Source: Tubulanus polymorphus
Taxonomy: Eukaryota; Animalia; Nemertea
DNA: 64,000 nt
Direction of reading: 5' to 3'
Assembly: GCF_964204645.1 (NCBI RefSeq)
Contig: NC_134029.1
Coordinates: forward strand, 1,736,001 to 1,800,000
The number at the start of each line of letters is the position of its first letter. Position 1 is the first letter of the stretch. The position numbers were made by a program, and so were the translations under genes. The notes beneath the pieces were generated by a model, which saw nothing but the letters and a program-made list of their open reading frames with translations, was not told the origin of the DNA and ran no database searches. Positions 31,801-37,800 of this stretch are shown one piece after another.

Positions 31801-34800
31801 ATTTTGTTTCCAGAAAAATTTGATGTGGTTTTCTGCAGGTTGTTCCTCCCGTCATACATTTTGAAGCGCAATATTCATATACCGGTATGCATGCTTTGGA
31901 ACTTGAGTCATTCGAGTTCACAGACCTCGATGCCTTTCTTATCGTCATCACTGCAACTGTTTTGCTATTGTTAAAGCCAAGGCTACAGTTTCCTGCGGAT
32001 TGAATTTTTATATAAAGGATATCAATATTTTGAAAAATTTTGATATGATAAAAATCCACTCCACACCAGTCTCACCCGTACAGCGTTGTAAAATCAGAAA
32101 TGTTAGGTAATAGCTAGACAGGGAAATTATTACTGCTATAAGATATCCAATCACTTGACCATCTTATCACTGTAATGACTGTTAATGGCTGATGAGATAA
32201 TAAAAAAACTATCAGAATGATTGTAAGAAGAATCAGTGAACTAACTACTATCTAAAAAAAGTAATATTGACCCACCAGTGATTTATAACGGGTATTTTTA
32301 ACTAATCTACCATTAAGAATTTCTATATCCGTTCTGAAAGAAAAAATGGTTCAAATGTTGATTATGTATTTGAATAGAATCGTATTTGAATAGAATCATG
32401 AGTGAAGGTCAATGGATTGTAAATATAGACACCAGTGATTGATTATGAGATGGTGAACGTAGGGTTAATATTTATCGGTTATTTTATGTGTGAGAGAAAT
32501 GACGAAAACAGCTGATTGAAATCACACGCTAGTCCGGTCAACTCGGTACTAGTCTCTCCTATCATCTGTATTTGACATACAATCGAACCCCGCCCTAATT
32601 TCACACATAGTTCACTGATTCTCGTCTCTGTAAGATCAGTATTGATCCACCGTCGATTTATTACAAAAAACAGTTTAATTTTCTCGAGTGTTTTGTGAAA
32701 CTCTGGTCTAATTACGCTCGCCGCGACTGAGAAAGAAATACCGTAATGATTTTTTCTGAATTGCTTTCAGACTATGACTCATGGGTTTGGCTTCGACAAT
32801 TTCTGTTAATTACAATCAGATATTGTTACTATTTTGCACTAAGTACTGATCAGTATGTTTAATGTATACTGGTTTATAATGGTAGTCACTGTATTTATTA
32901 GTAATAATCAAATCATATGATCTTCATTTATTCGATCTATGTTGGATTGGCCTCACGCGATGCATGACCACATCTTATTTGACCATTTAGATTGTGATAT
33001 TGTGTTGTAAGTTTTTGAGCTACCGGGTAGTTTTTTTGGGTCCACTGACCGATGACTTCACTATCTCGATTCATCTGGTATTCAATCTATCAATGTATTT
33101 TGTGAATGTTTTTTTGAAGGTTGGAGAAAGCGCAGGAGGAACATCAGTTGGTTCGCGATGAAAAGTTACATCTAGAGAATAAGATGAAAAAAGCTGTTGA
33201 AGAATCGAAGGTAAGAAGTGTAGTGTGTTACTTTACACGTTGTCAGATCTGAGATGTTTATGGTAATGTTAATGTGGAATGATTCATCATGTTTAGGGTG
33301 AAGTTGCTCGAATACAAGCTGAAAGATCTGCAACACAAGAAGAGATTCTTAGATTAAAGTTAGCTGAGGAGGAACTCGTACATGTAAGTACATTATGATA
33401 CAATAGAAGATTGATTTATGGAGCTGTTGAAATCGTGATGTGAAAACTAATTGAATTATCTACTGCAGTTACGCCTGATGTTAGAACAGGCGGAAAAACA
33501 ACTCTCCGAACAACAATGGCTTCCACCGGTCGAATTACAAGATTGGTTACAGTTCACATATGAAGTTGAATTTAAAAATTACAACGCAAAGAAGTTAGCG
33601 GCTGAAAAACAGTTGGCAGCTGCTAAAGAAGGGGTACGTTTATGATATAATATTCCGTTTAAAAACTACAAAATATCATAATATTGTATGTCTTAAAAAT
33701 GAACTTGTACTAGATCCTCGTAGATCTTATCCAAATGAACTTCCTATCGAAACTATAAAAGGTCACGCAATCGATTTTATCGATCTGTCCATGATTTGTA
33801 TAAAAATGTTATCACTTGAATGTGGTTAATTTGTGATAATGTTGTCTTATGATTCGATATTGTTTTCTGTATCATGTTTCTACTCTATCTCTCTCTCTCT
33901 ATAAACTGAAAAATGTAGTCGGTCTCAGTCGTTTTAAGCAGAATGCCAGCATTTCTATCCAGCCTTCGCTTCTGTATTCAATGTTAGATTGAAACATATG
34001 TCACACGCATTAAGACCCTGCTAATTTCTAGTTTATGTTGTCATTGCTTTCATGAACTTCTATTTGTCGACCCAGAATTGATTTGATACCTAGCGTGATG
34101 AAGGTAGCGGTTTGTTTTCTAATCGTTGTTTGTATTGATGTGAATGAACTGTTTTCAGTGCGAAAAGCTACGTAAAAAGCGCAGTGCATTTATGGGCTCA
34201 TTACGGATAGCCCACAGCGATAGCATCGATGAAATAGATCGCCGTATTTTAGATGCCCGGTAAGATGTAGGGCCACACTCCACGAAAAAGAGAGAAAGAG
34301 ACATTTTCGCTTCAACAGCAGTTTGTAAATGAAAACCATCGTATAAGAAAAATCCTTTGATTCCATCCATCAATATTCCAATATCATGGAGGAAGATCGA
34401 GAACTGTTTATCCGAATATTTCTGAAATAGATTCCGTTTACAAACTGTTTGTAAGATACTGTGTTTGCAGTGAACTATATCTCGTGTGCTTGTGTTCTAG
34501 AATTCTATTGCTTTCTGTGTTAGTTTCACCTAAATATGTGACTTTTTACATGAATCATCCGTATAGACTTAATATTAGTATTGTATCACTTTTCTCAAAT
34601 ATGAACAGAAAAGATGCATTCATTTAAAAAGCCATAATTTTATATTAGTAAAGATTGTAGAGTTTCATCTTTAACCTTCTTTAGTTCATATTTTTAAACA
34701 TTGAGTCTTTCTTTCTAATCTAAAACTGTCAGATAGATGTAAAAAGAATGACTCGGTGTTGTGTATTCTATTTACATACATAAATCGAACGCATTTATTA

Positions 34801-37800
34801 TAGGTTTCACTGAATTTTTGATAAACACATTCTAATTTCAAGTTCAGGGTTAGAAATTGTAACCTGTGTAGTTAACATGCACATTTTTCAATCTTTACTT
34901 CAATGTTTATCCATGTAGACTGAAAAGTCATCGAAAATTTAGTGAAACACACAAACCAATCGGTAATTTCTAAGAGAACGTTAACCCTGCCACCACTGCC
35001 CGCCAAAGACCTGATATTTTGATAATTGCCCTACACAAACAAACATGCTCATTTTTCAGTGTGAAAAAATACGCAAAAAGAGAGCAGCGGTCATGGGTCC
35101 GTTCCGTATAGCTCATAGTGGTAATTTTGATGATGTTGATAAACGTATATCAGACGCAAGGTATATTCATTACAGTTCTCAATGTGTCATTGTCGTCTTC
35201 TATCATTGTTGATTATTATTAGTAGTTAATTACTCACTAGATCTTTGATTATTTAAGCGAAAAGCATGTTTTCACATCACTGATTCAGATCTGGTTCATT
35301 TATGTGCTTCATTTGCATGGATTGCATCCTTCAATCTCAGCTTTTGGCTGAGATTGAAAATTTATTTTGTTTCAAAACAAGTTTATGTATGATAACTTTA
35401 TATCAGGTTATTGTATCTTCGTTATATACGTCTCCTTAGTCTCTTTCAATATTGAAAACAAATATCTTGACTTCGTAAAATGACAAATTGTTGGTTTCGG
35501 ATCCTGTTGTTAAACCACAATTATATATATATATACATACGCTACTCGTGAAAAACCCTCAAATTATTGATATTTTCACAGAACTAAATCAAGTATATTT
35601 TAAGTATCTATTTCCTAATAAAACGGATTTCCTGAATCAGTGAAATTCGTAGAAATATTACTCTTCTATGAGAAATTTTGATATTGAAGCTAAATTGAAT
35701 AAGATTAGTAACTTAAATCTCTTTTGATAGGTAGAATAATGTCTGATTTACGAATCTTCATTATTACATGTATTACTCCCTTGTTCCACCTACCCTACCC
35801 TACCCTGCAGTCATTCCTCTCTCCCTACCCCTCTCCCTCTTGTCATGTATTTATGTCCATATTCTATGCACGCATATTTTTATGTATATTTTAGTTTTTA
35901 GCTGCTACTTATGACCGGGTAGAGATTATAACGGGCATTAGTTTGATGCTTATTTAACATTGGCTTATCTTAACCTGAAAAAGTATATATTACTTTCCTC
36001 CTAGAATAGTCCTAAAGATTATAATTCATTCAAATCATTAATGCCATTGTTTTTATCAATTCCTGTGAGAATGGACACAGAGTAGAACTACTGCATATAA
36101 TCATGTACAGTAGACCGCGCTTGCCTGGCACAACCTGTCTCTGAGGCCAGCCAAATCCAGGACAGTGACTTACAGGTCATCATCACATGTCAGCTGAAAA
36201 TGTTGAACATTTTGTCTGGAACATGTGATGATGCGAGGCAATTGGCTCCGTGGCAAGCGCAGTCTACTAGTCTGCATATGAAAACTGCCTGTCTGAATTC
36301 AGTCATACTGCTTCGATTTCAATTCAGTTTCTAGATACAATGATGTTCATTACGTTTGTGTGAATATTTTGTAGAGCTGCATTAGAAGAAGTTCGTAAAG
36401 ATCTACAAGAACGTCTGCATAGATGGCATCGGATAGAGGTGTTGTGTGGATTTCAGATTGTTAATAATCCGGGCTGGACTAAATTAGGAGCAATGTTACG
36501 TGATAGTTATGCTTCTGGTAATGTCAATGCACCTGTCATACCGAACCCAGGTTAGTATTATCACCGTGTTACTGAGGGTACATGGATGATTGCAGTGTAT
36601 TCATAATTCTAACCGTTTGTCATATTCCAAAATGTTTTGATAACTGAGGGCAGGCTTTAGAGACTAGATACTCAAATTGATTCTAATATTGAATAGATAA
36701 CCTATGCGTTAGATATCATTTGTAAAAATGAGAAGTCTTCGCTGGTGTTGAATTCATACTAGTCAATAAAACCTAGCCCCTGATGACAGTTGCATAGTCG
36801 TGGCTTCGATCCCAGACAGGTCTTAGACCATCTTAGTTCGATAGCCGATCAAACAATTTGGGACGACATTTGAACTGAGGTCACTACTGTGCAGCTGGGC
36901 CCTTGTGTCTTGTCTCTTGTAAGACTGTTTACCTGTGTCATATCCGGCAGTAAGACTGGTTCCCTCATGTCTCTAATTAGGTCGATATCTGAAGAATGTC
37001 GGAGCGTCCTCAGCCTCGATCACGTATCCTCCATTCGTTAAACATTACGCTCAAGTTTGGAGAAGACGTTCCTCCACTTCGGGTCGTTGTACGGCTGATA
37101 ATAAACATCTTAGCTAGGTTTCATTTATGCTCTTCGTTTTAAAGTTGTTCAAGTTTTTCTATTTCTCAATTCATCACTGCTTTTTGAAAGGTTGCTTCAA
37201 AAAAAAAAACTTCGCCAATCTTAATGTAGTTTGATAATGTTCTTTTTTTGGTATACAGTTTGACGTATTTTATAATCTCAATGTTCGATTAATAAATTCA
37301 TATTTTATTCGTAATAAGTCTTTTTACTAACTGAATGTGTATTTTCTGCAGTCAGTACTCGGTATTTTTAACTACGGAGATTCTGTCTCCTATTTGCTAT
37401 AATGCGTAGTTGTCACTCATCAGCTCTTATTTCTGGGTCATTTTTAATGTGGTAGCATGAAACATTAAGCACTGCTATCTTCTCTGAATGTTGTGGTTGA
37501 TGGATCTTTTCTTCACGTTTTATAAGGTCTCATTTAATCCGACTATTTCATCTATTTTTGACTTCAGTAATTGATGTTAGTTAAGCTAATAACTGTGTTA
37601 TTTTGTGTTATATGTTTACAGTCGTCAGACGTGGAAGTCGGGATCAATTATTAGAAGATTACGATGACGATACCGCATCTAATTATTCGAACTCCGCTGT
37701 TTATGATTCGTCTGTTGCTTCATCCGGTGTAGAATCAAAGAGAGGAAAGTTTTACACTGTCGGATTAGGTATGTGTCGTACATAATTTACCTTCTGCCCT

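Follow-up and report, generated by a model that had tools for sequence, protein, structure and literature searches.

Can a single STIM gene supply, by splicing, two versions of the apex with which its product activates Orai? The question is raised by the STIM gene of the palaeonemertean ribbon worm Tubulanus polymorphus, in which two similar exons, here called A and B, lie next to each other between the same constant neighbours. We analysed a 64,000-nucleotide (nt) stretch of contig NC_134029.1 that contains this gene (hereafter the window; positions count from its first letter, and the features are collected in Table 1). From the evidence below, we put at roughly 85% the probability that the STIM gene of this animal has a pair of mutually exclusive exons that arose by tandem duplication and encode the apex of the Orai-activating SOAR/CAD domain.

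By every feature tested, sequence comparison assigns the gene to the STIM family. When a library was searched with the upstream exon, a protein of 763 residues, XP_074649722.1, came back that is identical to the window and is named 'stromal interaction molecule homolog isoform X3 [Tubulanus polymorphus]'. All four exons of the apex region matched Pfam SOAR (PF16533) above the gathering cut-off. Exons A and B, each alone, matched positions 40-72 with 42.6 and 37.1 bits, respectively (cut-off 25), and the flanking exons matched positions 1-38 (upstream) and 75-101 (downstream). These searches were run with single exons or RefSeq proteins, and exon joins were translated by a local script only. 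PF25578 (EF-hand_STIM1), PF00536, and PF07647 were precomputed on proteins P0001 and P0153, the SAM exon was also matched, and the transmembrane stretch and the polybasic C-terminal tail of STIM are recognisable in the protein sequence. When all six frames of the entire 268-Mb assembly were searched, one SOAR locus was found, consisting of exactly four SOAR pieces, indicating that Tubulanus has a single STIM gene. Both isoforms align without gaps to the sequence of the human SOAR crystal structure 3TEQ (E about 1e-33). The apex exon corresponds in this alignment to human STIM1 380-413, as an earlier reading of the window without database searches (the sequence-only reading) had claimed; in terms of SOAR helices, it runs from the last part of S-alpha-1, with the basic KKKR patch, through S-alpha-2 and S-alpha-3 into the first part of S-alpha-4.

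In front of both A and B lies a pyrimidine tract that ends in CAG, and GT follows each of them, the borders being ...ttttcag/TGCGAA...TGCCCG/gtaagat for A and ...tttttcag/TGTGAA...CGCAAG/gtatatt for B. Both start in phase 0 and leave 2 nt over, and the split Arg codon is completed by the downstream exon. The two exons are identical at 65 of 101 nt and encode the same amino acid at 21 of the 33 whole codons (22 of 34 residues when the split Arg codon is included), and different codons are used for 13 of those 21 identical residues. Since 101 nt is not a multiple of three, only the inclusion of a single exon keeps the frame: local translation reached an early TAG when the upstream exon, A, B, and the downstream exon were all joined, and an early TAA when the upstream exon was joined directly to the downstream exon. 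The sequence-only reading had described two paralogous 101-nt exons of phase 0/2 with canonical splice sites, 800 nt apart, sharing 22 of 34 residues with many of them differently coded, and had predicted both stops; all the details of it that were checked proved correct. The intron that follows exon A begins with GTAAG (34260-34262), and read-through from A gives CGG TAA, a stop right after the apex.

Both exons are represented in the RefSeq isoforms of Tubulanus. Isoform X2 (XP_074649721.1, P0153; 780 residues) contains exon A, modelled as joined to both of its neighbours, and isoform X1 (XP_074649720.1, P0269; also 780 residues) contains exon B, as do isoforms X3, X4, and X5. The proteins of X2 and X1 differ at 12 of the 34 apex residues only. 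The read evidence consists of Logan assembled contigs, in which the labels of the sequencing runs, X1 and X2, are distinct from the names of the RefSeq isoforms. The contigs of run X2 behave like RNA in that spliced joints are present, including 33383>33469. The joint from the upstream exon to A (33633>34159) was found in one contig with a depth of 20 and an anchor of 21 nt, that from the upstream exon to B (33633>35060) with a depth of 115 and an anchor of 27 nt, and that from B to the downstream exon (35160>36375) with a depth of 108 and an anchor of 100 nt; no joint from A to B (34259>35060) was seen in the contigs of this run. A 1344-nt contig of the upstream exons ends 2 nt beyond 33633, on the 'TG' common to A and B, and we read this end as the branch point in the assembly graph between the A and B routes. 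Loose contig ends at 36550/36552 mark the 3' junctions of the downstream exon. Thus, the contig joints directly demonstrate the splicing of exon B on either side and that of exon A on its 5' side, with the 3' side of A modelled by RefSeq. Three of the four junctions that the sequence-only reading had proposed for examination were recovered in this way; the fourth, from A to the downstream exon, is taken up below. Run X1, from another sample, is DNA-like, with even depth and no joints, and covers both exons as well as the intron between them.

These observations show the upstream donor at 33633 joined either to the acceptor of A (34159) or to that of B (35060); mRNAs with both exons or with neither would be removed by nonsense-mediated decay. 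The products would be two full-length STIM proteins in which the calcium sensor, CC1, the remainder of SOAR, and the tail are unchanged, and the apex alone is exchanged. Two other bases of exclusivity were considered and rejected: steric exclusion between A and B is ruled out by the 800-nt intron, and U12-type incompatibility by the splice sites, all of which are ordinary GT-AG. The sequence-only reading had further suggested a search of the flanking introns for docking/selector pairings. All that this search yielded were short inverted repeats, AT-rich and of the kind expected by chance, and no intronic element or pairing was found to be conserved between Tubulanus and Lineus longissimus, the two species compared.

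Table 1. Positions of the STIM exon pair, its surroundings, and related loci. Rows without a prefix give window positions; residue numbers are those of human STIM1.
Feature	Position	Strand	Evidence
STIM coding span (RefSeq isoforms X1-X5)	25807-41317	+	tblastn of RefSeq proteins P0153 and P0001 onto the window
Constant upstream exon (CC1 end and SOAR helix S-alpha-1; ends ...AAAKEG, phase 0)	33469-33633	+	Pfam SOAR 1-38
Intron 1 (GT..AG, 525 nt)	33634-34158	+	joint 33633>34159 in one run-X2 contig
Exon A, 101 nt (Ser393/Leu394/Ile402)	34159-34259	+	Pfam SOAR; RefSeq X2 (P0153)
TTA encoding Leu in exon A (equivalent of human F394 / STIM2 L485)	34201-34203	+	codon table; 3TEQ alignment
Intron 2, between A and B (GT..AG, 800 nt)	34260-35059	+	sequence
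Exon B, 101 nt (Pro393/Phe394/Phe402)	35060-35160	+	Pfam SOAR; RefSeq X1, X3, X4, X5
TTC encoding Phe in exon B (equivalent of human F394)	35102-35104	+	codon table; 3TEQ alignment
TAG ending the frame when A and B are both included	35109-35111	+	local translation of upstream exon, A, B, and downstream exon
Intron 3 (GT..AG, 1214 nt)	35161-36374	+	joint 35160>36375 in run-X2 contig
Constant downstream exon (SOAR helix S-alpha-4 / CC3 onward)	36375-36550	+	Pfam SOAR 75-101; in all RefSeq isoforms
TAA ending the frame when A and B are both skipped	36396-36398	+	local translation of upstream and downstream exons
Lineus exon A, 101 nt	L006:11212-11312		
Lineus exon B, 101 nt	L006:12465-12565		
Orai-like locus L011	C2:27657004-27657408		Pfam Orai-1, 163 bits
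Orai-like locus L012	C2:14693975-14694379		Pfam Orai-1, 126 bits
Orai-like locus L013	C2:5021521-5021925		Pfam Orai-1, 112 bits
Orai-like locus L014	C2:23219892-23220281		Pfam Orai-1, 76 bits

The same pair of exons is present in Lineus longissimus, which belongs to Pilidiophora, a different nemertean class from that of Tubulanus. The order at the Lineus locus is upstream exon, A, B, and downstream exon, with AG/GT flanks, and among the five RefSeq isoforms examined, X1, X4, X5, and X6 carry an A-type apex and X2 a B-type apex. Between the two worms, 25 of 33 residues are identical for A against A and 22 of 33 for B against B, compared to 15-19 of 33 for the cross pairs and 17-21 of 33 for A against B within one species. 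The proportion of nonsynonymous differences between the nemerteans (pN) is 0.14-0.18 and that of synonymous differences (pS) is 0.63-0.78 (0.14 and 0.63, respectively, for exon A). The sequence-only reading had called for an estimate of the ratio of nonsynonymous to synonymous substitution rates (dN/dS); the low pN relative to pS bears out the expected constraint, and pN and pS are given in place of dN/dS itself, which is precluded by the near saturation of the synonymous sites. In a small tree of 33 columns, the two B exons group together with 93/86 support; the grouping of B with amphioxus and Lingula in the same tree is not trustworthy, and the tree cannot place where exon B arose with respect to other phyla. 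In a DNA comparison of the two loci, alignment is confined to the four exons, the introns being unalignable.

Because the A and B exons of Lineus are orthologous to those of Tubulanus and only the exons can be aligned, these sequence comparisons place the A-B duplication before Palaeonemertea and Pilidiophora split and show that both copies have been retained by purifying selection since then. This split is the deepest, or nearly the deepest, in the nemertean phylogeny. The results agree with the sequence-only reading, which had taken the pair for an old duplication under selection rather than an assembly artefact and had proposed a search for both exons in related genomes. The variant sites listed from the contigs lie in introns, with one in the downstream exon; among these listed sites, to which seven more outside the listing must be added, none falls in A or B, which lends slight support to constraint on the two exons. 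In addition, a metagenome contig from a Lineus-like worm (L009) contains the upstream exon and the A exon and ends 1.8 kb later, and a further contig (L010) contains the upstream exon only. A word-limited search with the B-exon region returned only Tubulanus proteins, and a profile built from the two B exons had no match when metagenomes were scanned; both results are uninformative about other nemerteans. Short database fragments were also searched for with just the downstream exon, and no candidate emerged.

The residues that are exchanged between the two exons were assigned by the 3TEQ alignment. With the residue of exon A given before that of exon B, the exchanges are Ser/Pro at 393, Leu/Phe at 394, Asp/Gly at 400, Ser/Asn at 401, Ile/Phe at 402, Arg/Lys at 407, and Leu/Ser at 410. 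The sequence-only reading had singled out Leu (TTA, 34201) versus Phe (TTC, 35102) at the F394 equivalent, together with S/P at 393 and I/F at 402, and both the codons and the alignment support it on each of these points. The basic patch at 382-387 is kept in both exons (KLRKKR in A and KIRKKR in B, versus KIKKKR in human), as is His398. Phe in B and Leu in A at the F394 position are seen in both nemerteans.

Other invertebrates indicate which of the two copies is closer to the original. In the brachiopod Lingula and in the gastropods Haliotis and Babylonia, a single apex exon lies between the same constant exons, and in each case it is A-like and has Leu; that of Lingula is 79% identical to Tubulanus A. 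Leu is also found at the apex in the annotated STIM of Pomacea, Physella, Octopus, Nymphon, Tetranychus, the hemichordate Glandiceps, and amphioxus. Phe is found in scorpions, ticks, spiders, horseshoe crabs, Saccoglossus, a sea urchin, insect-like sequences, and vertebrate STIM1. Judged from the Leu and the A-likeness of the single-exon outgroups, exon A is the ancestral-looking copy and not a specially weakened form. Exon B is, on the same kind of comparison, the derived and apparently nemertean-specific copy, characterised by Pro-Phe, Gly400, Phe402, Lys407, and Ser/Thr410, which are common to Tubulanus and Lineus.

What these exchanges might do is suggested by work on the human proteins. 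F394 in STIM1 versus L485 in STIM2 largely explains the strong versus weak gating of Orai1, and L402 of STIM1 is part of the proposed STIM1-Orai1 gating interface, where it contacts the Orai1 loop residue E166 (PMC7795233). The F394L mutant of STIM1 exhibits lower efficacy, a looser resting clamp, spontaneous unfolding, and constitutive puncta (PMC10616141). With positions 394 and 402 exchanged while the basic patch and His398 stay constant, the two nemertean isoforms would be expected to differ in the strength of Orai gating or in their partner; they would also differ in the ease of unclamping, B being expected to be the more STIM1-like. As the human gating and clamp positions 394 and 402 are exchanged in the same manner in both worms, a difference between the A and B isoforms in Orai coupling and ease of activation is most likely. 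A more specific proposal, that the two form a convergent STIM1/STIM2-like pair in which B is tightly clamped with high efficacy and A is easily unclamped with lower efficacy, with 394 and 402 as the main determinants and possibly with different Orai members as partners, is one that we put forward tentatively, as a possibility with the odds somewhat against it. To read Leu as weak would be to extrapolate from human STIM1 and STIM2. As for the possible partners, at least four diverged Orai-like loci, all on one contig, were found in Tubulanus versus the single STIM gene, and in each of them one long open exon spans the later transmembrane helices together with the C-terminal helix.

Several other explanations were weighed against this evidence. 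Mis-assembly can create tandem near-copies, and protein P0002, an unrelated database STIM model of 552 residues, has an exact internal repeat of the upstream and apex region that is probably an assembly or gene-model artefact rather than a biological duplication. The second exon might likewise be an artefact of assembly or of haplotypes, or else a neutral duplicate of recent date that has yet to decay. However, the DNA of the two copies is identical at only 64% of positions and their synonymous differences are saturated, the independent DNA-like run X1 covers both exons, and the same ordered pair occurs in Lineus with otherwise unalignable introns. The run-X1 contigs, the Lineus pair, the pN and pS values, and the divergence of the introns refute this explanation, to which we give virtually no weight. 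It might also be that only exon B is productive in Tubulanus and that A is rare or unproductive, through regulated unproductive splicing or intron retention that lowers the output of STIM. The joint from A to the downstream exon was not seen, and the run-X2 contig that reads from A into the intron meets an immediate stop; moreover, the B joints are about five-fold deeper than the A joint in contig depth, and exon B is present in four of the five Tubulanus RefSeq isoforms. In contrast, the frame, the 101-nt length, and both splice sites of exon A are intact in two nemertean classes, its pN of 0.14 versus a pS of 0.63 would be needless for a poison exon, and the A type is found in four of the five Lineus isoforms examined. 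RefSeq X2 joins A to both neighbours, and Logan contigs drop minor branches, so that the absent joint proves little. We consider a gene with B as its sole productive apex exon quite improbable.

A further alternative accepts both isoforms and holds that they are matched to different Orai paralogues, or that they differ mainly in the clamp between CC1 and SOAR and in the activation threshold, not in gating efficacy. Matching to paralogues is favoured by the presence of at least four diverged Orai-like loci beside one STIM gene, and E166, the Orai residue contacted by L402, is a site that could vary among the paralogues (PMC7795233); nothing links either isoform to an Orai paralogue, however, and the Orai loci were seen as open frames only. 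A difference in the clamp is favoured by the human F394L mutant, which raises spontaneous unfolding and puncta besides lowering efficacy (PMC10616141). Both forms of the alternative are favoured by the many invertebrates in which Leu-only STIMs are the sole activators, and both are also compatible with a difference in efficacy. We regard it as unlikely that paralogue matching or threshold, rather than efficacy, is the main distinction, while giving this alternative serious consideration.

The exon-pair reading and its functional extension must also be set against the following points. The joint 34259>36375 is absent among those of the run-X2 contigs, and one contig of this run continues from exon A about 57 nt into intron 2. 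The use of exon A in Tubulanus is thus partly supported, by one joint with a 21-nt anchor, the RefSeq X2 model, and conservation. Logan contigs drop minor branches and stem here from one sample of one study, so that the isoforms cannot be quantified, and none of the public runs on record as RNA contained the stretch. The nemertean sampling covers Palaeonemertea, by Tubulanus, and Pilidiophora, by Lineus, but not Hoplonemertea, and the support for the B clade comes from the 33 columns only. For the functional part, many invertebrate STIMs have Leu as their one residue at this apex position; the F/L rule of the human proteins may therefore not hold here, and the direction and size of any gating difference cannot be read from the sequence.

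Apart from the apex, the 3' part of the gene also varies among isoforms. An alternative C-terminal exon at 38161-38337 is used in RefSeq X1 and X2 and is shortened in X4, and another at 39315-39452 is used in X3 and has a counterpart in Lineus X1 and X2; RefSeq X5 is without both. In addition, at one loose end of a run-X2 contig, 36550 is joined to an exon that starts near 36981 and is present in none of the five RefSeq isoforms. This exon is in frame and, unless it is spliced further, stays open for about 45 codons before a stop. The 36550>36981 splice could give a short isoform truncated just after SOAR, like Lineus X6 (485 residues).

The mutually exclusive apex exons proposed here resemble known systems in part. 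As in vertebrate STIM1 and STIM2, the same position is exchanged between Phe and Leu, and His398 and the basic patch are constant. In contrast, whereas the vertebrate pair arose by gene duplication, the nemertean forms would arise by exon duplication and either/or splicing in one gene, and, unlike STIM1 and STIM2, they have an identical EF-SAM sensor, CC1, and C-terminal tail. Beyond the F394/L485 exchange, the nemertean swap also alters positions 393, 400-402, 407, and 410, and the Leu form is the ancestral-looking one, the two systems being compared by sequence alone. That splicing can vary the Orai-activating domain of a STIM protein, and with it the coupling to Orai, is known from STIM2.1/STIM2-beta, in which cassette exon 9 adds an in-frame insertion of 8 residues (VAASYLIQ) to CAD/SOAR that disables the activation of Orai1 and makes the protein an inhibitor (PMC4411291, PMC7795233). 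The nemertean case differs in being a like-for-like replacement of 34 residues that leaves SOAR intact in both versions. The pair also shares the features of mutually exclusive exons in general that are kept exclusive by the frame: the exons are adjacent, homologous, and equal in length and phase, and their length is not a multiple of three. Full-text literature searches turned up no publication that deals with either mutually exclusive STIM exons or the STIM of nemerteans. The sequence-only reading, which knew of no description of such a pair, therefore stands as far as the literature searched is concerned; both kinds of isoform are, however, already listed among the automatic RefSeq models of NCBI for two nemerteans.

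It is with the SOAR apex that STIM contacts Orai and opens it, and the splice switch exchanges positions 394 and 402 within this apex. On the basis of Tubulanus and Lineus, this switch has been kept for the whole known history of the phylum. It offers a natural experiment on apex function, in which two isoforms share the same sensor and tail and have at least four candidate Orai partners. The wide occurrence of Leu at the apex, where it is probably ancestral in lophotrochozoans, bears on how far the human F/L rule can be generalised. If the reading of a strong and a weak form is true, one functional split would have been reached in these worms by the duplication of an exon instead of a gene.

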